Shown: piece by piece, positions 11,083 through 59,670 of the stretch
Layout: each line of letters starts with the position of its first letter
How positions within the stretch are numbered: the first letter of the stretch is position 1
Source: Macrostomum hystrix
Taxonomy: Eukaryota; Animalia; Platyhelminthes
Assembly: GCA_950097015.1 (NCBI GenBank)
Contig: CATNEN010000008.1
Span: 4,092,001 to 4,156,000 of the forward strand
DNA length: 64,000 nt
Reading direction: 5' to 3'
The notes under the pieces: model-generated
Seen by the model: the letters and a program-made list of their open reading frames with translations, nothing else
What the model was told of the DNA's origin: nothing
The model's database searches: none
Translations under genes and position numbers: made by a program

Positions 11083-11896
11083 TGTTATACAACAGCAATT
11101 GTTACGCCTGATAATTGAATTTAGGATAACGGAACAAACTGATAATGTCTGACTGAAAAACAAAAAATTTTGTATTCAATGTATTTGTTTCGAATGATAA
11201 TCAAGTTATTTAACGCAGTTCTGGATTAAACCAGACTTAGCTGGAATTTGCTAACCCATACCTATGCAGTTATGCAAATAAGTTTAGATACATACGCCAT
11301 ACCATAGGCCGCAATGCATCTTCTATTTGCAATTGCAAGTATCAAAACTATTGCCAATTAATACAAGCTATAGCTGCGATACAATAGTCAAACTTGTGGT
11401 TTCATATTTCATAATTCAGATATTTCAATTGTTTTTTTGCACTTCGTCCTCTATTCTGTAGTAGTTGCAAATCTGGGTTGACATTAAAAACGAGTTAGAC
11501 AATTAGACAATAGCACTTCTTGTGGCAGAAATTCAATTCAATTTAATTGTCTTACAAATTCACATACAAACCGTTTATTAATAAACTCATAAACAAATTC
11601 ATGACGTGCTTGGTTGTCCTATGCCCAGCTGAAAAATCCAAAGTACAGACAGGACAGGCGAGCACGCTGCAGCCACGTGATTGCTTTTCTCAACACTTCG
11701 TCATTGGCTGAGCCAATGAGGGGGCTGCTGGGTCACAGAATGAGATTCACACTCACGAGACTGATGTCAAAGAATGCTAAAACGACTATTAGAATATAAG
11801 TTTAAACGGTAACGTTAAAATTACAATCTGGTTTGAGAGTTAAAGAGACAAGATTTCTCTAGATATAGAAGTACTAGATTTGTAAAAATCAGCAGA

Positions 11897-19200: not shown

Positions 19201-19618
19201 CAGGTGTTCGCTGTCCAGCACGGAGCACAATTCGGCGATTCTCTCCAGCGCGGCGGCTGTCTCGCGAATGCGGCCCTCCTCGCTGACAATGACGCGAACC
19301 TTGGCCTCCGTGGATAGCGCAGTCTCCTCGCAGAATCGGCTGTCCATGTATTTGTCTATTTCATTGTAGCGAGCTAGTATGCGCTGCACTTTGTCACGCT
19401 TGGCTGTGCTCGACTCAAATTTCTTGTTAACAGCTTGGATTTTGTCAGCACACTAATTAAAAAAACGATTTTAATAGAGATGTATGTTCGAGTCATTAAA
19501 AAATGAAAATATTACCATTACTTACAGATTCAGCTTCCTTAATAGCGGCAGGTGGGCAAGCACCAAACACCTTTCTCTCCATCTCTGTAATTCTTTCTTC
19601 AAGCACTGCATAGTCCAT
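13234..19618 (-). CDS. DCTN3: Dynactin subunit 3 (p22/p24); exons 19526-19618, 19078-19452, 13234-13299; 177 aa
   Basis: Spliced product MDYAVLEERITEMERKVFG...KRDKVQRILARYNEIDKYMD...VLDSEHL...YFNY|MDLVSKQFIAWNKRVRKAEGK* matches DCTN3 hallmarks (LERWVYG, KRERV, LDSAHI, LSKQFVQWD). All introns are GT-AG, phase 0. Confidence 0.9.
13407..13560. repeat. ~155-175-bp dispersed repeat, copy 1 of 3 (DCTN3 intron 2)
   Basis: TGTGTCAAAC...GAGCACTATGAGCAGACT...GCCCTAGAAAAAACCAAT...TTTCAATCGGAGCAGC shared with 18547-18715 and 18861-19035. Confidence 0.9.
13716..18456. repeat. 32-bp (and 26-bp variant) satellite CTCCCAAGCTGGAGCAGTGTGAGATTTAGAAT in DCTN3 intron 2
   Basis: 4.7 kb, roughly 150 units. Confidence 0.97.
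18547..19035. repeat. Dispersed repeat copies 2 (18547-18715) and 3 (18861-19035)
   Basis: Direct repeats of 13407-13560, 314 bp apart. Confidence 0.9.
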
Positions 19619-21758: not shown

Positions 21759-24700
21759 ATGAAGGTATGCTTGTTGCTTGTGTATGCATTTCTATAGAAT
21801 TTACATTGTAACACATATTCATGTTTCCTTGCCCCCTATCTCTTTGATTTTAGCGGGTATTTCATCTGCCACCAAAGTCCCATGGGAGTGGTGGGATAAC
21901 ATTTTCTTGGCAGAGAAGCATCGGTAATCTGATTGCCACCACAGGGTAAGAAAAACGTATGATATCTCGTACTTAATACATAAGAGGCGTTAGTTTTTTT
22001 ATAAAAGAAAAGCTCAAGTTTACTTTTCATTTCATAAAAAATTTGTGTAAAAAATTAATTATGCTAATATTTTCCTCAGCATCTCAATCCTTAATCTAAA
22101 AACACAGGAACGATCAGCGTTTGAATATCTACGACCGTCATGGTGAAGTAAAAGGTGAACTGAGTCTCAATGGGTAAGTTTTTGTCTAATAGACTGTTAG
22201 ATGCTTTTTATCACAAAAGCTTTTTTTGCTTTTTTGTATTGTTTCTGGTATTAACATAATCCCAATCCCAAATCCCAGAAATTGTACTGGCATGGACTGG
22301 AACAAGGATGGCGACTATCTGGCCGTCATTACAGACAGGAGCTCCATCATATTGCTCTGGGACGCTCACACTCTGCGGCTATACGAGATCGACAGCGGAT
22401 TTAAGTGAGTCTACTCGGGAATTCCGGTCTTCATATATATTGACCTCGAGTAGTTTGACCTCGAGTAAAAAACCGCTCTTTTTCCCAGAGATCCGCTGTC
22501 CTTTCTATCCTGGTCGGCAGTCGGTCCACAACTAGCGGTTGGCAGTACCAAGGGCAACCTGCTGTTGTACAATCATTCCACCTCGCGCAAGGTGCCAATC
22601 CTGGGCAAGCACAGTCGCAAAATTATCTGCGGCTGCTGGAGTGCTGAGAATCTACTAGCCCTTGGTAGCGAAGACCGGACTTTAACGGTCAGCAACTCGG
22701 ATGGCGACACGCTGAAGCAGACTAGCCTAAGAGATGTGCCCAGCCTGACACAATTCTCAGAGATGAAGAGTGACGAGCGCTCAGCAATGGGTGACAACAC
22801 CGTCTCCTGCGTGATTGGAGGGAAGACGCTATTCTTGTACAACCTGCAGGATCCTGAGAATCCAATTGAGTTGGCCTTTCAAGCCCGCTACGGACAAATA
22901 GTTGACTATAGGTGGTACGGCGATGGCTACATCATGATTGGTTTCTCTCAAGGCTACTTTGTCATCATCTCGACCCACATGAAGGAGATCGGACAGGTCG
23001 GTATAGAGAGGGACGTTGTTTCATAGCGGGTTTTAAAAGACAATAATTATCCCAAAAATTCATGCAGGAGCTATTCCAAGCACAGGATCACAAGAACAGC
23101 TTGAGCTCCGTGGCCATCTCAACCACTCTGGGACGCTGCGCTTCAGCTGGCGACGATAGGGTTCGAATCCGCGACCTCAAAGAGCCCAGCGACATCACGA
23201 GCATCATCACTTTGGAGGACGAGAAGAGCGTTGGTCGCGTTGAATGGACCGAGGACGGCCAACTGCTAGCTGTGGCCACTCCCAAAGGCAGTCTGCACAT
23301 CTTCCTGACCAAGCTGCCCATGTTGGGAGTCGCCTGTCAGACCAAAATCGCCTATTTGACTTCGCTGCTTGAAGTGACTCTTGTTGATCCAGTGGATTCT
23401 GTGAGCTTTGGCGCAGGACTAATTTGCACATTTTTTCGTGGGGAGGACATGGTTTGAGGGGATTGGTCAGTTAGAGAGATTGTTAGCAAGAAGAGAGGTA
23501 GTTGGTCAGGGAGTGAGGTGGTTGGCTAGGGAATGAGGCGATTGGCCAGGAAGTGGGGTGGTTGGTCAGTGAGGTGGTTGGATTGTCAGGGCGTGAGTGT
23601 ATTGGTGAGTGGCGAGGAGGTTAGAGAGAATTGGTGAGTGGGAACATTTCATTTTTATTTTATTTCATTACTGTCAGACTGTCGCAGCAAAGAATCTGCC
23701 AGTGGAGGTCGAGCCAACCTTCATTGGTTTGGGCCCCGATCACCTGGCTGTTGGCATGAACAATCGGGCCTGGTTCCACCGGATTTCCGACGCCGGTGAG
23801 CGACTGCTCAATTTTGAATTGAATAAAAAAGTATTTTATACTTCTCGAAAATCAGGTTTATTTAAAACGAAAGCGCAAAACCAACCCAGGCATTGTGCCG
23901 CAGTCAAGCGAGGAATACCTCGGCACCGTCAGCTCCGTTAAACTCAACTCGGAGTACGCTGCTGCGCTGTTTGAAGGGAAAATAATGCTGCACGTGGTGA
24001 GTGAGCGGTCCGGCTTCACATTGCTAAGGCATTGTTAGTCTCTGATCAATAATTCTGGTCAAATAAACTTTCACAACTCAATCAGTACGGCACAGAAGTG
24101 TCCAAACTAAACAGCAGTGGACGCAGCAGCTATCGAACTTTGAAGGCCAGGGTAAAATTAAGCCGCTTTAGAGTCCAAATTTAGGAATATTATTTCCTGT
24201 ACAAGTCGATTCTGTAATCGATAGTGAATTTAGTGCAAATTTTTAAGAAATGTTGTCTCCAAAAAATCTGATTTCCTAGTAAACTATTTAGATTGCATCG
24301 TTTACCTTCTCTATTTGCAATCATCGAACAGAATGTCTCCCTATTATAGAAACAAAGCGAATTTAATTGATTAAAACAAAACATTTACCTGGCTGGTCCG
24401 AAGCTAAAATTAAAGAAACACACGCAACTGATTATGAGAGAAACAAAAAATAAGCTGCAATTTAATTGTTCGCACTTTATAAACCGTTTAATGCAACCAC
24501 CTGACTGTGTTTACTTCTGTGTCTTGTGGGAATATTTATTTATAATTTTTTTCTGCTAATGCGAATTTCATTGCGTTGACTCAGCATTATTGGTAGAGAG
24601 ATTGGGTAGGGATCAGTGGGGATTGGGTAGGGATCAGTGGAAATTGGGTAGGGATCTGTGGGGATTGGGTAGGGATCTGTGGGGATTGGGTAGGGATCTG

Positions 24701-27700
24701 TGGGGATTGGGTAGGGATCTGTGGGGATTGGGTAGGGATCTGTGGAGATTGGGTAGGGATCTGTGGGGATTGGGTAGGGATCTGTGGGGATTGGGTAGGG
24801 ATCTGTGGGGATTGGGTAGGGATCTGTGGGGATTGGGTAGGGATCTGTGGGGATTGGGTAGGGATCTGTGGGGATTGGGTAGGGATCTGTGGAGATTGGG
24901 AAGAGATCAGTGGAAATTGGGTAGGGATCTGTGGGGATTGGGTAGGGATCTGTGGGGATTGGGTAGGGATCTGTGGAGATTGGGAAGAGATCAGTGGAAA
25001 TTGGGTAGGGATCTGTGGGGATTGGGTAGGGATCTGTGGGGATTGGGTAGGGATCTGTGGGGATTGGGTAGGGATCTGTGGAGATTGGGTAGGGATCTGT
25101 GGGGATTGGGTAGGGATCTGTGGGGATTGGGTAGGGATCTGTGGGGATTGGGTAGGGATCTGTGGGGATTGGGTAGGGATCTGTGGAGATTGGGTAGGGA
25201 TCTGTGGGGATTGGGTAGGGATCTGTGGGGATTGGGTAGGGATCTGTGGGGATTGGGTAGGGATCAACATAAATTATTTTCATAGAAATACGAAAGCATA
25301 CATGTTGCTCGAAATGAGATTTGAAGATGTGAAAAGTTTTGTTTCATGCTGATTTTTCATAGAAATCGCAAATGCACATTGTCCTTTGTGTTCTTCCCCA
25401 GATGCTCTTGAACTATTTTTCTCCCAAATCATGATCTTGTGATCTGTGTGAATGCAATTCTGAGCACTGGCTATCGAATCTATTTATTAGTTTTATTCAT
25501 TCTTTTAATTACCAAAAACAACTAAAAATAAAAACTTAGGGATTTCTTGTTTGATCCTCAATCTGCAGATCGAAGGCGAATCGACCGGAGCCAAGGATGA
25601 AGAGCGGGAGAGGCGCCTGTTCCCGGACAAGAATCTGGGCAACATGCGAATCACCTGTCATGAGCTCACACCAGACTTTCTCATCTTTGGCACCGATGTG
25701 AGTCACATCTGTGGTTTTTTGTGGATGAAAAGGCTTTTAAAATTAATGTTTTCTATAAGTTGCGATTCTTAGAATGATAAATAACGTTTCTTAGAATTCA
25801 CAATTCTAAGAATTTTAGATTTTTAAAATTTAGAACTTACGTTTCTTAGAATATACGATTCTTGGAATTTGAGATCACGGTTCGAAAAATTATCGACTCG
25901 AAGAATTTACAAAAAGAATTTTTTTAGGAATTTTAAAGTCAAAATTGTTAGAAGTATAGATGTTTAGTATTTTTAATGATTCTTGGGATTAAAAAACCTG
26001 AGAACTGACTGTTTATTGAATAACGAATTCTTACAATTTGTGGCGTATACTAAACTCAACGGTTTGAATTATAGATTTTATTAGCTGTTTAATTAATTGA
26101 TGCATTGAACTAAACACTAACCATTAGGTGAATGAATGACTCACTTGAAAATACATTCCACAGACTGGCTGCGTCTATTTCTTCTACATGGAAGACTGGG
26201 ACTTCTCTCACGACATCAAGCACACCTGCGGAATTAAGAAGATCTTTCCGAATCTATACGGCACCCGGGTCATCATCTTCGACGATCGCGGCGAAGCGTT
26301 TGTGTGTAATCCAGTAAGAAAACCCTTCGTTTTTGATTGGTTGCTATCTTTAGAACAGTGGTTAGGGAGAGAAGTGTATGCATAACTGGGTTGTGCAGTG
26401 AGGGAAGGGCGCAGATAAAATGTAATGTACATTTGTGTGTACGTAAATGATAGTGGTTTAATTTTGTAAGAAAACCGTCCGTTTTTTACTGGTTGCTATT
26501 TATAGAATACCGTTAGGGATAGAAGTAAATGCATGACAAGGGGGTGTAGTGAGGGAAGGGCGCAGATATCAATGTACGTAATAGAGTGTACGTACACGAT
26601 GGAAAAACATTTCAGCTGAACGATCACATGATTCCAATACCGAACTTCAATGCGCGCACAACAGGAGCTATGTGGGACCAGAACTTCAACGATCAGGTGA
26701 AAGTAGACTTTCTTTATTGTGAAATTATTGTTTATTTGCAACTTAAACGTCATTTGGAACTTCATGTTATGCTCCATATAATTTTTTTCATGAGAAAAGT
26801 TACACAAAATTCACGCAGAATTTATTCGTGACTACCACTGACGTGTCCATTGATGCTTATTACATGGAAGACGCTGTTCAAGGTAAATTGCCGGCCTTTG
26901 GTCCCAAACTAACCCACATTGTCTGATGAGCAGAAAGGTAAAGTAAAGAAGATTAAAAAGCAATGTGAAAATGTTCTAATTAATCTTGAAATTTCTTTGA
27001 GAACGATTGTATTCTGATGTTTTTTCTTTCTCGCTCATCGGACAATCTGAGTGCGGTTTGGTCTGACGCTTTGTGTTGCAAAAAACTAAACCTGATTTGG
27101 CTTTTGGTATTGTTGATATTAAACCGATAATTTTACTGTTGCCTTAGTTAATCATCGCAAGTAATAACCAAGTCCATTGCGTAGTTAAAATGGTAACCAT
27201 AGTAAAATTCTACGAGTATATTATTGCTTCTAATGTTCGCAACTAACCAATACGTGACTATAACATATTTTTTACAAATTCGTTGATTAATTGTTGTTTT
27301 AATGAATCAATATAAATTGATTTTGATTCGTTAATTAAAGTCTTTACCACGCAATGGTGGCAGGCCACAAAATAGTCCCATTTTTGTTTGTGACCGCTGT
27401 CTGTTAATGGCATGTGTCTGTGTTTGTGTTTGCGTAAATGAAGTTTACAAAAAGTCAAAATGTACTTTTAGTAGTGAAATAAAAAAATCTGTCAAATAAA
27501 AAAATCACAAAAGCCTGGCACAAAATAACAAAACAGGAAGTTTTCATCACATTCGACGACCAAAACGTCTTCACCCACCTGTTGGTGACTGACGCTTCGG
27601 GTATGAGTAACGGAGCACCTGTCAATCAACGCTCCTCGGATGGCGAGGCCAGCTTTATTGGCGGCGGCAGGCAGCCAGGGGCGACCCGCTCCGTCCAGGG

Positions 27701-30700
27701 GATCAGTAAGGAACATAAGTTTTAGGAATTAACTCAGTATACAGGGCCGATATGTATTGAAAAAGTCGAAAATAATTTCCTTTTTAATTGAAACTTGGGC
27801 AAGAAAGAAGCAGATTCAGAAAAAAAAATTTTACAGCTTTACACAAGGAAGCAAATCATTGCACCTGGACTGAGATTCGAACTCCCGACCTCTTGATCAG
27901 CTCTAAGCTCTAACCACTGCGACACCCACCCCACCCCAACCCCAACCCGACTCTTAATTAGGTCGAAAAGTAGATCTATAATATATACAGCCAATAAGCC
28001 TACAAATATTCCATTAAGAAGCATGGCATAAATAAAGAAGTATAATTTGCGGCCTATATGTATAGAAAATGTATATCAGCATTTGCATTGAAATAAAAGT
28101 CAGAAAAGTTCAATCAGCTCCGTAAGTATAATTCCCAGCGACTAGAATCTTTGTCTAAATTTTTCTTCGAAATCTCTACAAAATGGAGCTTTATGTACAT
28201 TATTTTTTTCTTTCTCTTTTCTGCTTCTATTGAAAAAAAGTTATCATTTCTCTGCTTGAAATGTTTTTTATAAGAAAATTAATTTATCTTCATTTTCAGA
28301 TAGTTTATTCAATATTTGGTCTTTAAACTACCACGAGGCTTTGTCATTTGAGACATTGCTAAAATCACTCGTACATGAATCGTGTGCACTGCTTTACATT
28401 ATCTTGTTGTTGTTAACACACACGAAAGTGGCCTGATATTCTAGAACCTGTCTCATTTGATTTTTGTTTAGTTTTTTAAGAGACGACGTCAAATGACGAT
28501 ATTTTCATACGAACCAATCAAAGCAAAGAACATAGGCTATTTTTAGAACAAATTTCCAAGAGATAATGTCGGATGACGCAACTTTCGCATTAACCAATCA
28601 GAATGGAGAAGGGTAGGCTATTTTTAGAACAAATGAAAACCCTCCCCCCCAACCCAACGCTAACCCCTGGCTAGGTCCAGTATGCGAGCACATCTGCACC
28701 ACCAAGCTGCCCTATGATCATTCGCCCCTGCTGCTCAATGGCGGCCAGGTGTACATGCACAATCAGGGTGGCAAATTGGCCAGCATGCTTCTGGGCTCTC
28801 ACAGCTACCTTGACTCGCTAGACAAGCTGGATGAATTGTCCGTAAAGGAGGTGAGTTCGATGGCTTATCAACCATTTTTAACATGCTAATATCGCTGCAC
28901 CGCAAATGAAACCAACCCAGATGCAGGCCATGTTTGCTCTGGCTGTGAAGGCCCGCCGCTTCAAGGACGCCTGGATCCTGGCTGAGCACATGGACAGTCA
29001 GGAGCGCTGGTGCGAGTTAGCCAGAGCCACACTCACCAGTCTGGACATTCCTCTGGGTGAGTTGATGGCAGAGACTATGTCGAGCGATTATTCGCCTCGT
29101 AATCTAAGATTGAGTACTTTGCTCAAGGATTAAGGTTAAGATTGTGGTTCTTCAGTTTACCCTGGTCGATGATTTTTCGGAATTCATTGGCGTCCCGAAA
29201 GAATCAAATTTTCGTTTTTTTTTCTGTTTTTCCATAAGTAATTTAGCATTAAATCTGTGGACTTCTCGCAATTTTCACGATTTTTTGTTTATCTCTTGAA
29301 TGCGTAAATTTTTTCCGGGTTTGTCGTTATAATGATGTCAATGCCAATGTCAAAGTTAATGTCTATATTCTGGATTTTCGTTCTTTTATTATTATTTGCG
29401 TGTTACAGTTTCTTATTAGCCGAAATTTTCTACAGAATGAACATAAATATAATGTGATGGATTATTTTGGTTATATTCGTTTTTCAGGAGAGCTGCGGGC
29501 ACATGCCACATCATTTGGTGATTAGTAGAAACGAGGAGGCAATTCTGCCCATTTAGCTGACTCCTGAGCACTCACGCACACAGATACCGTACGCAGGCAC
29601 ACACTCACACAGGTGTGTATATCTGCCCTGACTTTCTCATTGTCAGTCAGTGTACACTCTCACTGTGCGTTCGAGATTGGCCTTCAAGGGCTTGAATTGC
29701 ACGACAAGCCCCAGAGCCGCCCAAAATGAATGTGGCCTCTACGCGGAATCGAGCTCAGGGACCTTGGTGCTCTGCCACTCACCTCCTTTATTTGATGTAT
29801 TGCATACTTGTCCACTTACAACATGCAAGTTTCCACTTTTGCTGCCGCAACAGCAATTCGTCTCTACCGCGAGATGGGCGACGTCGGCATGGTGATGGCC
29901 CTGCAGAAGATCGAGGCTCACGAGGATCGCAATCTGCTAGCGGGCTACGCTGCCATGTTTCTGGAGCAGTTCGACCTCGCCCAGGATCTGTTCCTGGCCT
30001 CCTCAGCCCCTGTGGCGGCCCTGGATGTGAGCTCCTCACTTGTTCTCATGATATCATGACTCAAAACTGTCAAAAGTGCATCAATGCGAGACTGTCAAAT
30101 TCAACAGATGCGTCGCGACCTTCTCCACTGGGACTCGGCACTGCAGTTGGCCAAAGCTCTGGCCCCGGAAGAGATACCGTTCATCTCCAAGGAGTATGCT
30201 CAACAGCTTGAGTTCACCGGCGACTATGTTAACGGCCTCATGCACTTTGAGAAGGGCCTAACTCGGGATCCCAAACACCTGGACCACGACGAGGCCTGCA
30301 TGGCTGGCGTCGCACGCGTGGCTCTGCGATTGGGTGACTCAAAACGGGGAGTAGCGATTGCGACTCAGAGCAAGAACAAATTCCTTAAGCGTGACTGCGC
30401 CGGAATTCTTGAGAACATGCGGGTGAGACTGCTGGATTGATTGGGCTGCTGCTAACGTAGGGCTGGAGTTGGGAGTGAGGTTGGTGTTTTGAGTGAGGCG
30501 GGTGTTGGGAGTGAGACGGGTGTTGGGGGTGAGGCGGGTGTTGGGAGTGAGGCGGGTGTTGGGAGTGAGGCGGGTGTTGGGAGTGAGACGGGTGTTGGGG
30601 GTGAGGCGGGGCTTGGCGGTGAGGTTGGTGTTGGGAGTGAAGCGGGTGTTGGGGGTGAGACGGGTGTTGGTAGTGAGTCGGGTGTTGGTGGTGAGGCGGT

Positions 30701-32731
30701 TGTTAGGTGTGAGATGGGCGTTGTGAGTGAGGTTGCTGTTGGAATGATGTCGTGCCAAAGTTGGCTTAAAATTCCTTTAACCCTATCAACCTGTAGCAAT
30801 GGCAGGAGGCCGCCACCCTTTACGAGCAAGCAGGCTTCTACGACAAAGCTGTTGCTGTGTACCTTCGCTCTAAGAATCTGAGCAAAGTGGGAGAACTCCT
30901 GCCGTATGTGACCTCGCCCAAGCTGCATCTGCAGTACGCGAAGGCTCGCGAAGCCGAAGGTCGTTTTCGCGACGCCGTGGAAGCCTACAAAACAGCGAAG
31001 GAGTGGGAGAGCGTGATTCGGGTGTGCCTGGATCACCTGAGCGATCCCGAGCAGGCGGTTCGAGTCGTGCGCGAGTCCGGCTCCATCGAGGGCGCCAAAC
31101 TCGTAGCCAACTTCTTCATCAAACTGTCCGACTACAGCTCAGCTATCCAGTTCCTGGTGATGTCCAAGTGCCTCACTGAGGCCTTTCAGCTGGCCCAGAA
31201 GCACGGCCAGATGGAGACCTACGCTGAGATCATCGGCGAGGACGGGGCCACCGTCGAGGACTATCTGAGCATAGCCAAGCACTTTGAGAACGACAAGAAC
31301 AGCTACTTGGCGGGAAAGTTCTACCTGCTGGCCGGGCAGTACGAGAGAGCGCTCAAACATTTCTTCCGAGTGCCCTACAAAGACTCGGGTGAGCAGAACT
31401 GGGACTGAAGGAGTGGAGCATGAGCATGAGACAAGATGAGATCAGGATGAAACCTATTTATCCCCAATCAAAACCCATCAAGGCGACAACAAGGCCCTCG
31501 ACCTGGCCATCGAGGCGGTCGGCCGCGCTCAGGACGAGAAGCTGACCAACCAGCTCATCGAGTTCCTCATGATGGAGGACGAGCGCAGCGGGCCGAAGGA
31601 CGCCAAGTATCTGTTCAAGCTGTATATGGCGCTGAAGCAGTTCAGGGAGGCGGCCAGGACGGCCGTGATCATCGCCCGCGAGGAGCAGAACGCAGGGAAT
31701 TACCGGGTTGCTCACGACCTGCTGTTCGGCATGATGCAGCAGCTGCGCCAGAATCACATCAAAGTGCCCGCTGAGCTGGAGGCGTCCATGCTGCTGCTGC
31801 ACTCTTACATCATCGCCAGGATGCACATTCGCCGGGGCGACCATCTGGCGGGTGCCAGGCTGCTGGTCCGAGTCGCCGAGTCCATCTCCCGGTTCCCGGC
31901 CCACGTGGTTCCAATCCTGACTAGCACGGTGGTCGAATGCCAGCGATCCGGCCTGAAGTCCTCGGCGTTCAGCTACGCATCCATGCTAGTCAGGCCCGAG
32001 TACAAGGACCAGGTAGATCTCAAACTCAGGAAAAAGATTGAGACCATTGTTCGGCGACCGGAAAAGACGGAGCTGGAGGACGATCAGACCCCCTGCCCGT
32101 ACTGCGGCACCCAGTTGCCGAGCATGGAGCTCCAGTGTCAGCACTGCAGGAACAACATTCCTTACTGCATCGTCTCTGTGAGCTGATCCTAGGATTTGAC
32201 TTGTTGCTGCCGGGAAATATTATTATTCAATAAGTTTAGCTTCATTTTTCTTCAATTGCTGATTTTCTCTTTCAGGGCAAGCACATGCTGAAGGGAGATT
32301 TCTCCTATTGTCCAAACTGCGACTTCCCGGCACTGTTCTCCCAGATGCAGAGGTGAGAGAATTGTAATGACTGAAGGTACTGTAGGACATATTCAACTGA
32401 CAACATATCTTTATGAACCCACTCCTCTGTGACCCCATTCTTAAATGATCCCACTCCATTATGATCCCCTATTATGATCGCCTATTATGATCCCCTATTA
32501 TGATCCATTAGGATCCCATTTCTTCATGATCGCATAACCAAATGGTCCTATTTTCTCATTCTCCCTTAAATCTACTGATCCCTATCCACGAAGATCCCAC
32601 CAATCTTCTGATCCCACAGCCACCTGGAGTCTGATCCCAACTGCCCAATGTGCTCAAGTCAAGTGGACCGCGATAAAGTCACCAGGGCATTGGATGTTGA
32701 CAAGTACTTGAATCCAAAGTACGAACAGTGA
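21759..32731 (+). CDS. WDR19: WD repeat domain 19 / IFT144 (IFT-A core); ~1351 aa. Exons 21759-21764, 21854-21945, 22108-22173, 22279-22404, 22489-22996, 23068-23400, 23678-23795, 23890-23996, 25569-25697, 26164-26313, 26616-26696, [26819-26882 or 27537-27600/27705], 28675-28850, 28921-29056, 29854-30026, 30108-30422, 30797-31388, 31483-32177, 32276-32352, 32620-32731
   Basis: Extensive identity to IFT144 ([64 protein letters not shown]-terminal CxxC fingers). All introns are GT-AG; exon sum with a 64-nt exon 12 is 4056 nt (in frame). Confidence 0.97.
23455..23640. repeat. Degenerate G/T-rich repeat in WDR19 intron 6
   Basis: Recurrent GTGAGG/GGTTGGTCAG motifs. Confidence 0.6.
24597..25265. 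repeat. 21-bp G-rich minisatellite (GGGGATTGGGTAGGGATCTGT) in WDR19 intron 8
   Basis: About 31 units; reverse complement of the first units of the array at 41858-42307. Confidence 0.97.
26819..26882 (+). CDS. WDR19: WDR19 candidate alternative exon 12a ([22 protein letters not shown])
   Basis: cacgcag|...|gtaaat, 64 nt, phase 0 to 1; EDAVQG aligns with human KDTIQG. Confidence 0.55.
27537..27705 (+). CDS. WDR19: WDR19 candidate alternative exon 12b ([22 protein letters not shown]; short donor at 27600, long donor at 27705)
   Basis: aaacag|...|gtatga (64 nt) or |gtaagg (169 nt), both phase 0 to 1. [12 protein letters not shown] aligns with human [12 protein letters not shown]; the long form ends RSVQGI. 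Confidence 0.7.
27860..27930 (-). pseudogene. tRNA-derived sequence (SINE head or tRNA pseudogene)
   Basis: A-box-like GTCGCAGTGGTTAGAGC and B-box GAGTTCGAATCTC at tRNA-like spacing, but no complete cloverleaf. Confidence 0.55.
29487..29786 (-). mobile_element. tRNA-derived SINE copy A (WDR19 intron 14, antisense)
   Basis: TGGCAGAGC A box, CTCGATTCC B box, CAGTGAGAGTGTACACTG core, GGGCAGAATTGCCTCCTCG 3' region shared with the other copies. Confidence 0.85.
30462..30745. repeat. 18-bp repeat (GGGAGTGAGGCGGGTGTT) in WDR19 intron 16
   Basis: About 14 units, degenerate at the edges. Confidence 0.9.
32440..32618. repeat. Degenerate ATGATCCC-type repeat in WDR19 intron 19
   Basis: Recurring (A)TGATCCC(C/A). 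Confidence 0.6.
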
Positions 32732-33968
32732 TTGATTCAACAACCGGGCACATTTGAGTTGATTTTTCAGACCACGAGAACAAATTAATTCTTAAGCTTT
32801 TCTCTGTCTCGATTATTATCTGTTTTTGCTTTGTCTTTTTCTTTAAAGGCACATAAAATTTTGGAAAATGAAAACGTTTTACTTAACAGTTGACAGCATG
32901 CACGCAAACCCGTACTGAGAGTAGCATGGCTGGAACAAAAATACGACCGGAGGGTGTTTCTGTATTGTAGTGATAGAGATTTTCTCGAACCTTATTGGCG
33001 AATGTCAAAATTCATTTGTTTTACTTTTTAAGTTCTACTTATTTTCCTTAAAACTCTACTCACTATTCAACTTGTGCAACAAACTGAGTCTAATATTGCT
33101 GCTTCTACTGCGGATAATATGGTATCAGGTTATTTGTAAACCTCTTGTCTTTACAAGACTAAATTACAAGTTACTAATTACAACCTTGCAACATTATTTA
33201 ATATGTTATCTAAAAAACTAATATTCGTAGAAACTTAAACATAAAAAATTTGAATAACAAAGCAAAACAGTCTAGTTTCCTAAAGCAAATATTTGTTAAA
33301 ATGAACTTTTGTTTAACTGCCTGAATGGTTGAATTCAAATTTTATTGTTTACCCATGGCTGAGACTTATAATTGGAAATTATCTTTTGATTCCTTATTTA
33401 GTTACTGGGCTAGTTATTTAGTAGCTAAAGTGAATTTTATAGGTTCATGGCGTTTAACACCGCATTGTTGAAAACCTCGAGACCAACAAAAGTCACACTG
33501 GAAAAGCTATTTCAAGAGACCCGTGTGAAAATATTTCTCGCAATATCGCCCACCCCAGCCTCCGCCGGCCTCTCCAGCACACCCACCCCACTCCGCCAAT
33601 AGCATTCTTTCCTTATTGCAGCCTTCGCACCCAGTCGTCAAATCTTTGGATGAAAAAAAATACTGAGCTGGCCTCTGAAAACCCGACAGATGTACTGAGA
33701 AATAGGGTGAGGGAGAGAGATTGAGACGCGAAAGCGTCAGAGGTCTCAGAAATCTCTTCTTTAGTTCGCGACAGCAAGCAAGCCTAATGGGTGGTGGGGT
33801 TGAGCAGCTGCTGAGTACATCTTGCCTAATAAAAACTATTATAGTATTAAAATGCACCGACAAGGAGAGACAGCGAGGCAGAAACGCCCTCATCTGTGAA
33901 GCGAACTTGACTGAGAATTGAAGCTCGAAGCCCCAACAGGGATCTGCATTTCCCCCCCGCGATTTTCA

Positions 33969-36900
33969 ATGGAGGCTGCAGCAGCTGGCCCTGCCGCTGG
34001 TGGCAGCAATGGCGAAATGTACTCCATCGCCGCCGATGTCATCCAGGAAGAGGAGGCGACACCGCGCGGCTCTTCAAGCTCAGTCAATGGCCGGCCGAAG
34101 CAGCCGCAGCCGCAGCCGTCCAGAAGCCACAGGAAGTCGCAGCATCATCAGACCCAGCAGCAGCGTCAGCAGGTGAAGCAGGACCAAATCAAATGGATCA
34201 CCGCCGATGCCAAGAATGGCTTCTTGAGAATCTACCGACGAGACGCCCCCCAGGTGACCAACGGCCTGGCAGGATCAATAGCAGCCGCAGCCAAGGCCTC
34301 CTCGGTGATCGCCTGCACCACGGAGACAAGCGCGGCCAGGATTTGCCAGCAGATAAACTTGGCCAGCAACGCGCTCCACATGGAGACTCCGGACGGCCGT
34401 TTGCGCCGTCTCGACCCGTTCGAATGCCCGCTGGCGCTGCAGAATGCCCGGCTAATTGAGCTGGGATACTCAGAGATCAGGCACGTTCAAAGGCTAGGCC
34501 CGGCCATAGACATCGGCTGCTGCGTGGCTCGCTTCTACGCAGGCAGGCCAGCCGGCTGCCGGACCTTCGCCAGGCACAACCTGCAGGGCCTTCTGGAGGT
34601 TCGCTCTGGTGGCTCCGGGCTGCTGGCCAAGTGGGAGAAGCGACTGTGCGAATGCGGCCCGACTGCCATCACCGTGTACAAGGGTGAGGAGAGTGCCGAT
34701 ATTGTCCCAGTGTCCTAACGTCCCAGTGTCCCAACGTCCCAGTGTCCCAGAGTCCCAGTGTCCCAGTGTCCCAGTGTCCCAACGTCCCAGTATCCCAGTG
34801 TCCCAGTGTCCTAACGTCCCAGTGTCCCAACGTCCCAGTGTCCCAACGTCCCAGTGTCCTAACGTCCCAGTGTCCCAACGTCCCAGTGTCCCAACGTCCC
34901 AGTGTCCCAACGTCCCAGTGTCCCAACGTCCCAGTGTCCCAACGTCCCAGTGTCCTAACGTCCCAGTGTCCCAACGTCCCAGTGTCCCAACGTCCCAGTG
35001 TCCCAGCGTCACATTGACTCTGAATCGCTGAATATCTCGACGGTGCATGACGTCGGACGGCTTTGAAAGTTTGGTCATTGTGTAAAGGGCGCAAAATGTT
35101 GATTCAGATGGTGGACTTTCACGAAAATCGGTCATTCGGTTTGGGAGCTATCTAGAAGTAGGCAGCGGGTATTTGAAATATCCCAGTGGTGTTTCCACTG
35201 TTAACCGGGCAAAGCCTTGGCCCGAACTCAGGCACGGATAAGCTGGGAGGCGACCAAAGCTCGATTCTGCTGGCCAAGGGCAGCGTGGCGGCTGTGCGCG
35301 GTGGCAAGGCCGGTCGCGAGCACTGCCTCCTGGTGCGCGGGATCGGGCGCAACGGCGAGAAGGATCTGCTGCTGGCCTTCAAGGACGGAGTGGTCATGGA
35401 GCGCTGGCGAAAGCACATCGAGAAGGTGAGGAACCCGACTGGGAGGGATGAGAGGTAGAGTGATTGAGATGATAGGTAGAGTGAGGGAGATGAGAGGTAG
35501 AGTGATTGAGATGATACGTAGAGTGAGGGAGATGAGAGGTAGAGTGATTGAGATGATACGTAGAGTGAGGGAGATGATAGGTAGAGTGAGGAAGATGAGA
35601 GGTAGAGTGATTGAGATGAGAGGTAGAGTGAGGGAGATGAGAGGTAGATTGGCCGAGATGAGAAGTAGATTGTGGGGAGATGAGAGGTAGATTGGGGCAG
35701 ATGAGAAGTAGATTGGGGCAGATGAGAAGTAGATTGGGCAGATGAGAAGTAGATTGGGGCAGATGAGAAGCAGATTGGAGGCAGAGTCGGGGAAGTTGAA
35801 AATGTGAGTCCTGAAGCCTTACTGTCTACTTGTGGATTCTATTTCAGAACTTTTATAAGTGTAAATTACTCGTGAATGTCAAAACCGGGTGTTGGCATTC
35901 GTTTGTATTTAAGTATTTTTGTTGCAGATCTACGGAAATAAAGAACTTTGAGACAGTGATACAAAAACACTCACAATTTGTCTCAGACTTTGCGCAAAAC
36001 AGACAGGAAATAATTTTTGTTTCGATTCATGCGTGAAAAAAACAACTCTGATTCTTTAAGAAAAAATTCAACAAGCTGCCTTTAATAGTACAAAAGAGTT
36101 AGATAAAAGTGGCTAATAGTTTTCATTGTGCATTACTAATGAGTAGACACAGATGCAAGTAGTGTCACTATTTTAATTCACCAGTCAACCAGCCAGCAGG
36201 ACCAGACGGTCGACCTATCAGAGAGCCAGCTGGAGACGATCCCGGAGCAGCTGTTCGCGTTGGCCAAGCTGCGCAGTCTCAATCTGAAGCGCAACAGTTT
36301 GTGCACTAAAGCGGTAGCTGAGGCTCTGCAGATTCGAGTGAAACTCGGCTACCTGGAAGATCTGCAGCGATTCCAACATCTCACCGTGCTAAACCTGTCT
36401 GCTAACGCGTTGACGGAATTGCCATCACCTTTGTGCAGTTTGAAGTCGCTTGTTGAGCTAAATATAGCAACCAATCAGATTTCGGCACTGCCTAGCGAGA
36501 TTTCCGGCCTGACCAAGTGAGTGTCTGACAACAAATGAGGATCCAGGAATAGGATAGGGTGGGGAGTGGGGTGGCTGTTGGAGTGGGGTAGTTGCAAATG
36601 TACATTTTAACAGTAGAAAGACCACGCTATTCCCCCCATGGTGAAAGACAACGGAGTGTTTCAAATACCCGCTGCCTAGTTCACGATAGCGCCTAAACCG
36701 AATGACCGATATTCGTGAAAGTCCACTATATGGATCAAAATTTTCCGCCCTTTACGATGAACAAATTTTCAAAGCCGTCCGAGTCGTCAGCGTCGACATA
36801 TTCAGCGATTCTTGTCGAATACCCTGATGAAGCGCAACATCTGAAGCGGCGCTGTGAAAAATTCTATGGCAAATAAAATTTGCTTCAACAAAGCAACATG

Positions 36901-39900
36901 GTTACATGATGCAGTTTTGTGAGCAGAAAAATTATGCCTGTATTTGTGGTTTTTCAAGGACGACGAGAATCGTTGAATATCTCGATGATGACAATGTTTA
37001 CCGGATTGAGCGGAAAATTTTGGCGCGTGTTTTCATGCCGATTGTTGGAATATTTTGAGAGATACGAAAAAAATGAAATCTGGGTATTTCAAATACGCCG
37101 TGGCCTTTCTACTGCTAAGCAGAACCAATCAGCGTGAGGCAAGAGAAAAAATGCTTCACTTATAATTGATAAGGAGAGAAGGGAATGAAGGGAATTGCTG
37201 CTAAGCAGAACCAATCAGCGTGAGGCAAGAGAAAAAATGCTTCACTTATAATTGATAAGGAGAGAAGGGAATGAAGGGAATTGCTGCTAAGCAGAACCAA
37301 TCAGCGTGAGGCAAGAGAAAAAGTGCTTCACTTATAATTGATAAGGAGAGAAGGGAATGACTAACGGATTGAGTATTAATGAACTCAGGCTGGAGATTCT
37401 TCACGCGCACAACAATCGTCTAGCCAGCCTGCCAGAGTCAATGTCAGCCCTGACCAGCCTGTCAATGCTCGTACTGGCCTTCAATCACTTCCTGGAGGTG
37501 CCGCCGGTGCTGGCAGCAATGAGCAGATGGTGTGAGAACATTGTCATGCCTGGCAACCGGATCAGCGGCATCTCGGATCGCCTGGCTGACCGATTGAAGT
37601 CAGTGCGGAGAATCAATTTCAGGATGAACCAGATCTCACTGAATGGCACCAGCTGCCTCAGATTGGACCGGTTTCAACAGCTGGCCTATCTTGATCTCAG
37701 GGATAACTTGGTGAGTGACAGCCAGTGCGAGTGGGTCTTTTGATACATAGGACAGCTAACACTAGTTATTGTTGCAGATTGAAACGTTGGATCTGCGCGA
37801 CCTACCTTTGCTGGAGTTTTTCTGCTGCGAGAGAAACCGACTCACCGAGCTCAAGCTCAACGGCCGCTCACTGAAATCTGTGCTGCTTGACGACAATAGT
37901 GAGCAGGGGCGAGTTGCATGACCGATTCCATCACTTCATAACCAATCCGATCACTTCATGACCAATCCAATCACTTCATGATCAATCGAATCACTTCATG
38001 ACCAATCCGATCACTTCATGACCAATCCAATCACTTCATGATCAATCCATGCACTCTATTGACCAATCCATGGACTCTAATGACCAGTCCATGCACTCTA
38101 ATGACCAATCCATGCACTCTAATGACCAATCCATGCACTCTAATGACCAATCCATGCACTCTAATGACCAATCCATGCACTCTAATGACCAATCCATGCA
38201 CTCTAATGACCAATCCATGCACTCTATTGACCAATCCATGCACTCCGTGACCAAATCAACATCCCGCAGGGCTCGCCAGCTTGGACATCGAGCCGCCGCC
38301 GGAGCAGCTGGAATACCTGGACGCCAGCCAGAACCGCCTGACCCAGCTGCCACCGTACCTTGGCGACCTGAAGCAACTCGTCCACTGCAGACTCGCGCAC
38401 AATTTCCTGACCGAACTGCCTTCGGGATTTTTCCTTGGCGCAGCTGAAGGTCGCCAGCTGAAGGTGCTGAACGCGCACCACAACGTCATCCACTCGCTGC
38501 CAGAGACAATCCAGCCTGACTGCGGCATTGAAGACCTTCAACTGCAGCACAACTGGCTGAACTGCTTGCCCGAGACAATCTTCTCTGGCCTGCCGAAACT
38601 GAAGCTGCTGAATCTGACCAGGAACCGGCTGACATCGCTGCCGCGGCCAGAGACAGGCCTGGCTGATCAGGAGTTCAACAGCCGACTGCAGGAGCTGAAC
38701 TTGTCGTTTAATAATCTGGACAATGCGGCACTGCGAGTGCTGGCCAAGTTTCAGAGGCTGCGCGTGCTGCGACTGGCGTTCAACCAGATTACTGAACTCA
38801 CCGACGAGTGAGCGGCGCCTGTCAAACCAAATCAAATCTTTCCAACCCAATTGCTTTAGTTCAACCCTCGACCAGTCCATGGACTGAAAATTTGTACACA
38901 GCCACTGGCTGTGCATCTCGCCTAGTGTCTAGATCTAACCATGGTGTCTAGATCTAACCATGGTGTCTAGATCTAACCATGGTGTCTAGATCTAACCATG
39001 GTGTCTAGATCTAACCATGGTGTCTAGATCTAACAATGGTGTCTAGATCTAACCATGGTGTCTAGATCTAATCATGGTGTCTAGATCTAATCATGGTGTC
39101 TAGATCTAATCATGGTGTCTAGATCTAACCATGGTGTCTCGATCTAATCATGGTGTCTAGATCTAACCATGGTGTCTAGATCTAACAATGGTGTCTAGAT
39201 CTAATCATGGTGTCTAGATCTAATCATGGTGTCTAGATCTAACCATGGTGTCTAGATCTAACAATGGTGTCTAGATCTAACAATGGTGTCTAGATCTAAC
39301 CATGGTGTCTAGATCTAACCATGGTGTCTAGATCTAACCATGGTGTCTAGATCTAACCATGGTGTCTAGATCTAAGTATCGCTTTTCACTAAGATCCAGT
39401 TTGAGTGACAGGTTGCTGATATTCCAATCGCTCCCTCATCTCCTCAGCTTCGTCGGCAGTCTGCAATTCCTTCAAGAGCTCAACGTGTCGGGCAACCAAC
39501 TGCGCCAACTGCCAGACTCGCTGCTTCAGCTGGAGCGACTCACTGTGCTCAAAGCCCACTCAAACATGCTGCAGGAGTTGCCAGATTTTCGTCAGATGCC
39601 AGAACTCAGAGCGCTTGACCTCGGCTGCAATCACCTGCTCACTGGCTCAGTCAGGGACCTCATGGAGGCTCGACTGAGCTTCTTGGACCTGTCCTGCAAC
39701 GAGAAGATGGGCATGTCTATGCAGGACCTGACTGCTGTCAGGTGAGTTATTGCACAATGCTAAGGTGTGCTCATGTGTTCAGGTGTGCTCGAGTGTGCTC
39801 AGGTGTGTTCAGGTGTGCTCGGGTGTGCTCAGGTGTGTTCAGGTGTGCTCGGGTGTGCTCAGGTGAGCTCAAGTATGCTTGGGTGTGCTCAGGTGTGCTC

Positions 39901-42900
39901 AAGTATGCTTGGGTGTGCTCAGGTGAGCTCAAGTATGCTTGGGTGTGCTCAGGTGAGCTCAAGTATGCTTGGGTGTGCTCAGGTGAGCTCAAGTATGCTT
40001 GGGTGTGCTCAGGTGTGCTCAAGTATGCTTGGGTGTGCTCAGGTGAGCTCAAGTATGCTTGGGTGTGCTCAGGTGAGCTCAAGTATGCTTGGGTGTGCTC
40101 AGGTGTGCTCAAGTATGCTTGGGTGTGCTCAGGTGTGCTCAAGTATGCTTGGGTGTGCTCAGGTGAGCTCAAGTATGCTTGGGTGTGCTCAGGTGTGCTG
40201 GGGTGTGCTCAGGTGTGCTGGGATGAGTCCATTTGTGCTCAGTTAAGATCAGGTTATATACCTATAGATTCTATACTATAGAATCCAATACAAACGATTG
40301 CACAGGACAAAGAGTACAATCAAGACTGTCAACTCGGCTGGCGGCATTCAGCCATTGTCCCGAATGGCAACGGCAGCATCAGCAGCAGCAGCAGCAGCAA
40401 CGGGGACTCTAGGCAATGGTTCATATAGAACAGCCTATGCAACAGCCTCATCAGCATCAGCAGCGGCAGCGGCAGCGGCGGTCTCGTTTCCATTCGACAC
40501 AGGCCTAGCCGAGTCCACGGGCAGCCGGAACCGGATGTGCATCTCCGCCATCAAGAAGATGCCTTACCCGACGCCGGACAGCGCCCTGTTCGCCGTGTTC
40601 GACGGAGGCAGGAATCCGTCAGTACCGAGGCTACTGCAGGGCTCGTTCGGCAGGGCCTACTGGGAACAGCTGCGGGCCGGCTACGGGGAGCAGGTGCGCG
40701 CCGCTCAAATAAACACCACCCTAGCCTAATAAACCTTGATAAACACTAATAATCACCTTACCTGACCGTATAAAAGCACAGATAAGCACTCACCTTACCC
40801 TAAAAATGGGGGGTCAGTGTCAGAGCGGTTAACGCGTTTGCCTCTCGCACTTGGGGTGAAAGAGTGTACATTGCCTGACGATTTTCAGGGCAGATGTACC
40901 CACCCGTGTGAGCGTGTGCCTGTGTACAGTATCTGTGTGCGTGTGTGATCAGGAGTCCAGTGTCACCAAATGATGTGCCATTGCCCGCAGCCCTCCTGCA
41001 ATTATTATTATTATCCCAAAAACAGCAGCCAATTCCTAATTAAACAAACCGCCACCCAGGCCGCCCTTCGATACGCCCTGCTGAGCAGCCACCGCAAGCT
41101 GCTCTCCTACGGTCAACGCCTCGGAGCTTCAGGTGCCGTGCTGTGCCTGAAGCGCCGGTCGGTGGACCGCTGGGAGGCCACAGTCGGCAACGTCGGCAAC
41201 GCGGAGGTGGTGCTGGTGCAGCGGGACCGGCCGATGCGCCTGACCCGCCTGTTCTTGGCCCAGCGAGATCGCGACGAGGCCGAACGGATCGCCCAGGCCG
41301 GCGGCATGGTGACGGAGGACGGCCGCGTCAACGGCAGCTGCGACTGCACCAGGCAGCTGGGCTGCGCCTTCCTGCACCCGTGCGTGACACCCGAGCCGCA
41401 GGTGACCCAGGTCAACCTGGCCGAGACTGACGACTCGCTGATTTTGGCCAGCCGCAGCTTCTGGGCTTTCGTTAATTACGACGAAGCTGCCGAGGAGGTT
41501 CGCGAGGCGGCGCAGCCGGTGGCGGCGGCCAAACGCCTGATTGATCTGGCTCAGGTGCGCCGGGGAGAGAATGGGGATTCGATTCGACCTCGAATCAAAC
41601 AAGCAAATTGTTGGATTATACAATTTAAAGGAATGAACTAGACTGCTATAAGTAACGGACATAACGCGTTGAATAGTCAAGTAACGTTCTTGGCCAGGGA
41701 GTCGGTGGCAGAGCGGTTAACGCGTTTGGTATCTGTGTGCGTGTGTGCTCAGGAGTCAGCGAAATGGGCAGAATTGCCTCCTCGCTGGCTGCGGGTCTAG
41801 TGTCACCAAACTATGTGTCATTGCCCGCAGCCCTCCTGCAATTATTATTTTTATTATCTCCACAGATCCCTACCCAATCCCCACAGATCCCTACCCAATC
41901 CCCACAGATCCCTACCCAATTCCCACCGATCCCTAACCAATCTCCACCGATCCCTAACCAATCTCCACCGATCCCTATCCAATCTCCACCGATCCTTAAC
42001 CAATCTCCACCGATCCCTATCCAATCCCCACCGATCCCTAACCAATCCCCACCGATCCCTAACCAATCTCCACCGATCCCTAACCAATCTCCACCGATCC
42101 CTAACCAATCTCCACCGATCCCTATCCAATCCCCACCGATCCCTAACCAATCCCCACCGATCCCTAACCAATCTCCACCGATCCCTAACCAATCTCCACC
42201 GATCCCTAACCAATCTCCACCGATCCCTATCCAATCCCCACCGATCCCTATCCAATCCCCACCGATCCCTATCCAATCCACACCGATCCCTATCCAATCC
42301 CCACCGATAGGGGGTCGGTGACAGAGCGGTTAACGCGTTTGCCACTCGCACCACAGTCCCTAAGTTCTTCCACGGCGAGGCCACATTTATTTGGGGCGCA
42401 GCCACGGAGAGAAGGCTTTGGGGGCTTGTCATGCAATTTACGCCATTGAGAACCAACCTCCAAGGCACAGTGAGAGTGTACACTGCCTGACGATGAGAAA
42501 GTCAGGGCAGATGTACACACCTGTGTGAGCGTGTTCCTGCGTACGTTATCTTTTTACACGACCCGGAGCGTGTGTGCTCAGGAGCCAGCGAAATGGGCAG
42601 AATTGCCTCCTCGCTGGCTGCGGGTCTAGTGTCACCAAATTATGTGGTGACACTAGCCCTCCTGCAATTATATTAGATTATTATTCTTAACGTTCTTGGC
42701 CTCCCTTAGTAACTAACGAGATAGTAAAGTAACGAACATGGCCTCTTTAAGTAACGAACAAGTAAAATAACGTACTTAGTTCGGTGAATTAACAAAATCC
42801 ATGTTGGATAAACTTGAGTATCTGTCTAAATCTTTCGGTTCCTCACCCTGCAGGCCTACGGCTGCACCGAGAACATCACGATTCTGGTGGTGAAGATCCG

Positions 42901-55080: not shown

Positions 55081-55510
55081 AAATACCCAGTAGATTAGTT
55101 ATTTTTAAGCTCAGTTTTTAATTAACTAGACAAAAATTAGTCAAAAAGGAAAGATGGTGGTATAGAAAAGAACACATTTTAACATTTAAATCGTCTAATA
55201 AAGATCCTATGACACGTAGATTAGATTCCTAGACCCGAGGCAGTATTAGATAAAGCATACATTATCAGATGCCGTGATGAAAAACAACAACGACCTGTGA
55301 TACCCACAGGTTCAAGTAAAAAGAGCAAAATATTGCCAAGTACATCTAGCACAAAAGTATTGAAATCAAAGGACTACTTTATCTGCCAAAATAAACACCC
55401 ACTGTTATTGCCCTGAGTGATACCTGAAAACAATAAATATAGCGATATATATATATTATATTATATATTATATTATATATATTGTAAAATTTATATTACA
55501 AATATATAAA

Positions 55511-58500: not shown

Positions 58501-59450
58501 ATATCAGTTTGTTACTCAAAATGGGATATATCAGTTTGTTACTCAAAATGGAATATATCAGTTTGTTACTCAAAATGGGATATTTCAGTTTGTTACTCAA
58601 AATGGGATATTTCAGTTTGTTACTCAAAATGGGATATATCAGTTTGTTACTCAAAATGGGATATATCAGTTTGTTACTCAAAATGGGATATATCAGTTTG
58701 TCACTCAAAATGGGATATATCAGTTTGTTACTCAAAATGGGATATTTCAGTTTGTTACTCAAAATGGGATATTTCAGTTTGTTACTCAAAATGGGATATA
58801 TCAGTTTGTTACTCAAAATGGGATATATCAGTTTGTTACTCAAAATGGGATATTTCAGTTTGTTACTCAAAATGGGATATTTCAGTTTGTTACTCAAAAT
58901 GGGATATTTCAGTTTGTTACTCAAAATGGGATATATCAGTTTGTTACTCAAAATGGGATATATCAGTTTGTTACTCAAAATGGGATATATCAGTTTGTCA
59001 CTCAAAATGGGATATTTCAGTTTGTTACCCAAAATGGGATATTTCAGTTTGTTACTCAAAATGGGATATTTCAGTTTGTCACTCAAAATGGGATATTTCA
59101 GTTTGTTACTCAAAATGGGATATTTCAGTTTGTTACTCAAAATGGGATATTTCAGTTTGTTACTCAAAATGGGATATATCAGTTTGTTACTCAAAATGGG
59201 ATATATCAGTTTGTTACTCAAAATGGGATATATCAGTTTGTCACTCAAAATGGGATATTTCAGTTTGTCACTCAAAATGGGATATATCAGTTTGTTACTC
59301 AAAATGGGATATTTCAGTTTGTTACTCAAAATGGGATATTTCAGTTTGTTACTCAAAATGGGATATTTCAGTTTGTTACTCAAAATGGGATATTTCAGTT
59401 TGTTACTCAAAATGGGATTTTTCAGTTTGTCACTCGAAATGGGATATATC
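55511..59450. repeat. 27-bp AT-rich satellite (TTTGTTACTCAAAATGGGATATTTCAG)
   Basis: 3.9 kb, about 145 units; decays into degenerate units up to ~59585. Confidence 0.98.
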
Positions 59451-59670
59451 AGTAAATATTCAAAATGGGATTTGTCAGTTTATAAAAAATGGGATATATC
59501 GGTTAATACTAAAAATGGGTTAATACTAATACTAAAATAAAATATAAAATTATTTTAGTTCTCTATGTTAAATATGGGATATTTTAGACGTGATTTCCAA
59601 TGCTCTCATGGGCATACCTGTCAGTTATCCTTTGTTCATAGTGAAAGCATCTTAAAGCTAGGCTACTCAC

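Follow-up and report, generated by a model that had tools for sequence, protein, structure and literature searches.

The WDR19/IFT144 gene of the flatworm Macrostomum hystrix lies within the stretch of DNA analysed here, 64,000 nucleotides (nt) of the forward strand of contig CATNEN010000008.1 (assembly GCA_950097015.1, positions 4,092,001 to 4,156,000), which we refer to as the window, and it carries two candidate versions of its exon 12, named 12a and 12b. The gene occupies about 21.8-32.7 kb of the 64-kb window on the + strand. Window exons were searched one by one, and isoform joins of the window gene were made only for frame and alignment checks. One exon of 174 residues matched human WDR19 (PDB 8fgw_C) at E 9e-68, and the next matches after the human protein were the IFT144 chains of Tetrahymena and Chlamydomonas. 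Single exons also matched, in Pfam, both WDR19 propellers (PF23389, E 6e-85 and 9e-22; PF15911, E 3e-11 and 1e-6), the IFT140/172-type TPR region (PF24762, E 1e-10) and the IFT144 zinc finger (PF23146, E 4e-7), and the exon map reaches from the start to the C-terminus when a full-length ortholog is used as the tblastn query. The closest protein in the collections is PAA79483.1 (P0180) of Macrostomum lignano, with 91% identity over exons 9-14, while synonymous sites differ between the two species by ~55-60% (pS, the proportion of differing synonymous sites, about 0.55-0.6). By these matches the gene is the WDR19/IFT144 ortholog, as it had been named in the original prediction, a note made by a model from the letters of the window. 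Human WDR19/IFT144, as placed in the IFT-A complex (PDB 8fgw, 8bbf), is orthologous and alike in domain order; its residues 571-593, in the second propeller, align to the flatworm exon-12 segment, and the human segment quoted in the prediction is indeed 8fgw_C residues 571-593.

The exons and splice signals around this segment are as follows, with positions counted from the first letter of the window and a joint between two spliced exons written with the sign >.

26616..26696, + strand: exon 11, the branch point of the splice choice, ending at 26696 before GT and joined upstream by 26313>26616.
26819..26882, + strand: exon 12a, 64 nt, phase 0 to 1, AG-bounded, donor AAG then GTAAAT; the default version.
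27537..27705, + strand: exon 12b in its long form, 169 nt, phase 0 to 1, acceptor ACAG then G, donor TCA then GTAAGG.
27601..27602, + strand: GT of the donor for a short 12b, G then GTATGA, which would give a 64-nt exon at 27537-27600.
27706..28674, + strand: the intron between 12b and 13, with low depth in RNA contigs; retained or slowly removed.
27723..27725, + strand: in-frame stop, met when the donor at 27705 is unused (..QGISKEHKF, then stop).
28675..28850, + strand: exon 13, encoding the hairpin partner strand and the final portion of the second propeller, with joints 26882>28675 and 28850>28921.

All exon and donor coordinates and peptides of the original prediction proved correct when the window sequence was read again. 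Exon 13 matches Pfam PF15911 positions 235-275 and human WDR19 residues 601-642. The product of the long 12b is a strand segment followed by a G/S/R-rich loop of ~35 amino acids (aa) and then SVQGI(S). The reading frame into exon 13 is kept by 12a, by the short 12b or by the long 12b, each alone, and the exon lengths of 64, 169 and, in M. lignano, 193 nt all equal 1 modulo 3. Inclusion of both versions, or of neither, shifts the frame, as had been foreseen, and leads to a stop 39-48 codons further on.

RNA shows that both acceptors are used, that 12a is skipped when 12b is taken and that 12a is spliced to exon 13. The material consists of assembled contigs from four runs of one study, placed on 25450-29250 of the window, rather than of raw reads; contig depths are rough figures, and contigs drop rare branches. 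The neighbouring exons are supported by the joints 25697>26164, 26313>26616 and 28850>28921 in spliced contigs. In all four runs, an upstream contig of 1744 nt with a depth of 26-43 stops exactly at 26696, and two contigs begin 27-30 bases before the end of exon 11. The 12a path is found on one 2.8-kb contig that carries both 26696>26819 and 26882>28675 (depth 22-33, 4/4 runs), and the 12b path is marked by the joint 26696>27537, which skips 12a (depth 4.6-7.5, again in 4/4 runs). The depths of the two branches sum to about that of the upstream contig; therefore roughly 13-26% of transcripts use the 12b acceptor and skip 12a, and 12a, with a share of about 75-87% by contig depth, is the default exon. 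No 12a>12b joint was seen in the contigs of the four runs.

The 12b acceptor lacks a pyrimidine tract in both species (window 27490-27536; M. lignano locus L002, positions 7210-7256). The 40 nt upstream of it are A/C-rich, and a branch-point-like CTGAC or TAAC stands 12-16 nt before the AG. Such a sequence fits a weak, regulated 3' splice site.

Both versions of exon 12 have counterparts in M. lignano, where exon 11, 12a, a 12b homolog and exon 13 follow one another in matching order at locus L002 (NIVC01000632.1), although the introns on both sides of 12b are unalignable between the species. The 12b acceptor, ACAG then G, is kept; the first 20 residues of 12b are 80% identical (EVFITFDEHSVFTHLLVADA); a 12-residue block within the long form is kept as well; and the end of the exon is shared as an identical 16-mer, CAGGGGATCAGTAAGG. 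In both species the exon terminates in the 16 bases CAGGGGATCA followed by the donor GTAAGG, beyond which similarity falls to chance level. The M. lignano homolog is 193 nt long with an open frame, compared with 169 nt here, and the insertions and deletions (indels) between the two are all multiples of 3, measuring 5, 1, 3 and 1 codons in a pairwise protein alignment. The ratio of nonsynonymous to synonymous divergence (dN/dS, Nei-Gojobori) against M. lignano is 0.05 for exon 11, which has 93% amino-acid identity, 0.11 for 12a, 0.14 for the first 63 nt of 12b and 0.20 for the long 12b, and about half of the changes in 12b are synonymous, where 24% would be expected.

M. lignano has three WDR19 copies, at L002, L003 (NIVC01000665.1) and L004 (NIVC01001925.1), that are 91-96% identical over exons 11-13, and 12a and an intact 193-nt 12b are present in 3/3. 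Compared with the most diverged copy (L004), the long 12b has 2 mismatches in 193 positions and is free of gaps, in which it resembles exons 11, 12a and 13; in the introns mismatches amount to 8.5%, and there are 77 gap columns. In one copy the 12b donor is GTGAGG instead of GTAAGG, which is still consensus. Six M. lignano protein models contain 12a. Conservation in a related species had been proposed as a check on the original prediction, and it is borne out, with 12a and the long 12b both conserved as coding; judged from these patterns of change, 12a and the whole long 12b are shown to be under protein-level purifying selection between two Macrostomum-like species. A word search with the M. 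lignano protein region 567-720 returned only two M. lignano clusters and nothing from other Macrostomum species.

The same comparison bears on where 12b ends. The original prediction had presented 12b first of all as a 64-nt twin of 12a, extendable to the second donor, and a true twin at 27537-27600, spliced at G-GTATGA either alone or beside the long form, would equal 12a in length and phase, would keep the frame and would consist of little else than the best conserved part of 12b, its first 63 nt. We nevertheless find such an exon improbable. There is no GT at the place matching the 27600 donor in 3/3 M. lignano copies, the RNA contigs read through this donor, and coding conservation continues for another 105 nt past it, something that an exon ending at 27600 would leave without explanation. 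By alignment, the conserved 12b unit is instead the long form, 27537-27705.

To ask which version resembles the ancestral exon, we used a hidden Markov model (HMM) made from an alignment of 39 orthologs that excluded the window's own sequence. Of 2461 pieces from the six-frame translation of the 64-kb window, 12b ranked first (12.1 bits, E 0.02), with a minus-strand piece outside the gene, 19474-19521, nearly equal at 11.9 bits. When two flanking exon-11 residues were included, 12b scored 17.8 bits against 6.2 bits for 12a, which indicates that the default exon is the diverged copy. The original prediction had aligned both versions with the human segment; for 12b this agrees with the HMM score, but for 12a the similarity is weak. 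By hand count, 12a and 12b have 5/22 residues and 36% of bases in common. Lingula, Pecten and Tubulanus have the homologous segment in a separate exon of 67 nt with the phase seen in the flatworm, so a simple tandem duplication is plausible. An origin of 12b as a repeat or retro-copy was considered and dropped, the exon being single-copy in the 220-Mb genome (42 contigs). Searches of the PDB with the 21-residue exon peptides gave no matches, these queries being too short.

Folding of the isoforms from public M. lignano proteins, P0180 for 12a and P0279 for 12b, with AlphaFold2 (AF2) indicates what the exchange would mean for the protein. In the 12a protein, the second propeller is predicted with a mean predicted local distance difference test score (pLDDT) of 91, and 12a forms strands 251-255 and 259-268 of the model at pLDDT >90; the second of these is paired with the first exon-13 strand in a long hairpin, so that the exon boundary coincides with the hairpin tip. 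In the 12b protein, the exon forms strands 260-264 and 268-275 (VFITF and SVFTHLLV) at pLDDT 92-96, which are followed by ~41 residues at pLDDT <50 and then by the exon-13 strand. The models thus show 12a and 12b in the equivalent two beta-strands of the second propeller, in keeping with the predicted assignment of both exons to one propeller region, and the 12b form would preserve the fold while gaining a flexible loop at the hairpin tip. The propellers of IFT144, IFT140, IFT122 and IFT121 surround open 'carriage' compartments, in which membrane proteins are brought into cilia, and IFT144 is held in IFT-A by its TPR part (10.1101/2022.08.09.503213).

We consider it fairly probable, at roughly 0.62, that 12a and the long 12b form a mutually exclusive exon pair enforced by the reading frame, with 12a as the default and the long 12b as a minor version spliced to exon 13. 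The spliceosome would take either 12a or 12b after exon 11, and a chosen 12b would most likely be the long form, spliced to exon 13 at the conserved CA-GTAAGG donor. Only mRNAs with one exon 12 would encode the full-length protein, and those with both or neither would meet early stops, an exclusion enforced by the frame and nonsense-mediated decay (NMD). The 12b isoform would keep the ancestral-looking strands and add a disordered loop of ~35 aa (43 in M. lignano) at the tip of the exon-13 hairpin; the loop contains a conserved 11-residue motif. The long 12b would be the minor, and probably a regulated, version. That 12a and 12b stand above chance follows from the RNA junctions, the homology and the conservation in M. 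lignano taken together; the splicing of 27705>28675, the translation of a 12b isoform and any specificity to a cell type or cilium type are inferred. Our confidence is limited because the 12b>13 junction is missing and the RNA comes from a single study.

Several observations limit this interpretation or weigh against it. Between exons 11 and 13 there are 31 segments of 40-200 nt that are GT-AG-bounded, open and frame-keeping, and with so many chance-type candidates in the interval such segments carry no weight alone. At 6.2 bits, 12a is barely recognisable as a homolog of the ancestral exon, and, given this weak similarity, the case for an origin by duplication is one of position, length, phase and predicted structure. 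One M. lignano model in UniProt, A0A1I8I8I8 (P0279), does join exon 11, the long 12b and exon 13 in frame, but it is an error-prone automatic prediction, possibly purely predicted and not to be counted as transcript evidence, in which an early exon and 15 residues of exon 10 are missing, 22 intron residues are read and the C-terminus is truncated. When the 12b read-through open reading frame was used in a word search of the protein collection, no transcript-derived protein for 12b was returned. Most directly, no contig in the four runs contains 27705>28675 or 27600>28675. In runs X2-X4, the 311-nt contig that joins exon 11 to 12b is unbroken through both donors to 27817, and in run X1 a 690-nt 12b contig extends to 28192; since these contigs keep the downstream intron, 12b transcripts as sampled would stop at 27723. 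Accordingly, of the two alternative versions of exon 12 and the two or three isoforms that had been predicted, the use of both acceptors and the paths 11>12a>13 and 11>27537 are seen in RNA, but the 12b>13 junction is unseen, and the 12b contigs run into the intron and provide no mature 12b mRNA. The missing joint is nonetheless weak as evidence of absence, because rare branches are lost in contig assembly; a connection between the covered intron at 27706-28660 and exon 13, which has to be there if the transcripts do not end in the intron, is likewise missing from the contigs.

The state of the downstream intron raises the question of whether 12b is productive at all. In the four runs, the stretch 27534-28660 is covered at a depth of 2-7, and depth is zero at 26974-27481 and in the two introns sampled before exon 11 (25831-26084 and 26339-26592). 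Ordinary pre-mRNA background was dropped as an explanation of this coverage, given the zero depth in the other sampled regions. The coverage suggests that the downstream intron is kept in most sampled 12b transcripts and that its removal is slow or regulated. In the main rival explanation, which we regard as unlikely, use of the 12b acceptor would be unproductive: the intron would be kept, the stop at 27723 would be met, and the RNA would be degraded or detained with no 12b protein made, either as noise or as a means of tuning IFT144 dosage. This would account for the read-through of both donors with no 12b>13 joint in four runs, for depth across 27534-28660 with none in other introns, and for a stop that lies 62 codons after exon 11. 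A poison exon, however, needs no open frame, and the long 12b is open in M. hystrix and M. lignano alike, has indels in multiples of 3 and shows a dN/dS of 0.14-0.20 and many synonymous changes; the signature of a poison exon, nucleotide conservation without a coding signature, was not found in 12b. Moreover, its conservation breaks off precisely at a consensus donor that the two species share unchanged, the strands it encodes are modelled as part of the propeller with high confidence, and a premature stop goes with 12b only in the intron-retaining form (27723), being absent if the 27705 donor is used.

The read-through contigs could also represent a mature mRNA in its own right, encoding a truncated IFT144 of an estimated ~650 residues that ends in ..QGISKEHKF; propeller 1 and the greater part of propeller 2 would be present, and the TPR and zinc-finger regions would be missing. 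The peptide is conserved to QGIS(K) in both species, as such an isoform might lead one to expect. We judge it highly improbable, because the tail past QGISK is unconserved in both sequence and length (4 residues here, some 36 in M. lignano), inspection by eye of the ~75 bases that precede exon 13 showed no AATAAA, and RNA depth reaches 28660. The product would, in addition, lack the strands of exon 13, with which the second propeller is closed, and the TPR part that holds IFT144 in IFT-A (10.1101/2022.08.09.503213).

A mutually exclusive pair of the kind we propose would belong to a well-described class, in which such exons arise through tandem exon duplication (PMC9013439, PMC8373072, PMC9741552, PMC5740500). 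As in known cases, the flatworm exons are adjacent, equal in phase and both conserved; they would be versions of one ancestral exon, with one chosen per transcript, one structural element would be replaced, and a frame shift would enforce exclusion. They differ from known pairs in that the two versions are of different lengths (64 vs 169 nt, with a loop insert in one) and in that the downstream junction of the minor exon is unseen in the RNA contigs. A search of the locus for inverted repeats of the docking/selector type found only short AT-rich pairs, in introns unconserved with M. lignano. Competing RNA stems formed by docking and selector sites are present in only some mutually exclusive clusters.

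The original prediction had held that no such arrangement was known for this gene, and this part of it does not stand. A swap at this exon is already in public annotation for two nemerteans, and the flatworm is not unique. The RefSeq isoforms X1 and X2 of Tubulanus polymorphus (XP_074649650.1 and XP_074649651.1) are both 1342 aa long and differ only at 570-591, and the genomic sequence OZ123230.1 contains two tandem 67-nt exons bounded by AG and GT, at positions 9945-10011 and 11590-11656 of the extracted locus (L006), 1.6 kb apart. Isoforms of Lineus longissimus have the matching two exon types, ..KESYKG and ..RETVSG; with both types in Tubulanus and Lineus, the nemertean pair is older than their split. 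As in the flatworm, the exon homologous to human ~571-593 is swapped, here between isoforms of equal length. The nemertean copies differ from the flatworm ones in that both are 67 nt and both are ancestral-looking (20-21 bits), whereas in the flatworm the default has diverged and the alternative has an insert. Lottia, Lingula and Pecten have a single copy of exon 12, which makes it probable that the flatworm and nemertean duplications are independent, 22 residues being too few for a tree. Our literature search found no paper on alternative versions of this WDR19/IFT144 segment, in the human gene or any other.

Variation at the same place takes a different form in gastropods. WDR19 RefSeq isoforms of Haliotis and Gigantopelta have an optional insert of 22-24 residues at the exon 12/13 boundary, and the inserts of Haliotis asinina (P0309/P0308) and Gigantopelta aegis (P0302/P0303), TPEIMTPMYSGGFMEAPGMGVSVC and TPHITSHYMGYYEPANFGATVC, are related to each other. 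The gastropod insert shares the hairpin tip with the flatworm loop; it differs in being a cassette after a single exon 12, with no exon swap, and its sequence is unrelated to that of the loop.

The intron between 12b and exon 13 also contains a dispersed repeat:

27866..27920, - strand: core of a short interspersed nuclear element (SINE)-like repeat, ~55 nt, with a tRNA-type B-box (GGTTCGAATC-like).

This repeat has 33 other genome copies at 78-97% identity, which explains the depth spike and loose contig ends at 27865-27900; ARAGORN called no tRNA on the tRNA-like repeat at 27866-27920. Long minisatellite arrays lie in and around the gene, at 24560-25350, 30456-30800 and 55420-59540 and at many other places; one of ~0.8 kb is within a WDR19 intron, and another of ~4 kb has a unit of ~33 nt (a period estimated visually in the translation). 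The minisatellite arrays at comparable places in M. lignano are different ones. Downstream, at 33900-43500 on the + strand, is a gene with leucine-rich repeats and a PP2C-like phosphatase part, which by its translations alone is PHLPP-like. In M. lignano an RA/PH/LRR gene is found at the corresponding position, and gene order is thus conserved.

For annotation, the locus shows that homology-based gene finders may choose the wrong exon, the default being the diverged copy, and that a conserved alternative exon can be longer than its 64-nt look-alike. We further speculate, tentatively, that the exon 12/13 hairpin is a recurrent site of isoform diversification in spiralians, where exon duplication in flatworms and nemerteans and a cassette insert in gastropods, each independent, might adapt IFT-A to cilium types or cargoes, with the flatworm loop perhaps serving as a docking site. 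IFT-A is generally regarded as a single invariant machine of six subunits; if the pair proposed here is real, a conserved alternative hairpin with its loop would imply the existence of two kinds of IFT-A in some animals. M. lignano is a laboratory flatworm with motile, sensory and excretory cilia, in which this idea is testable. That exon variation occurs in nemerteans and gastropods as well points to a site of IFT144 that may be tunable without breaking the complex.

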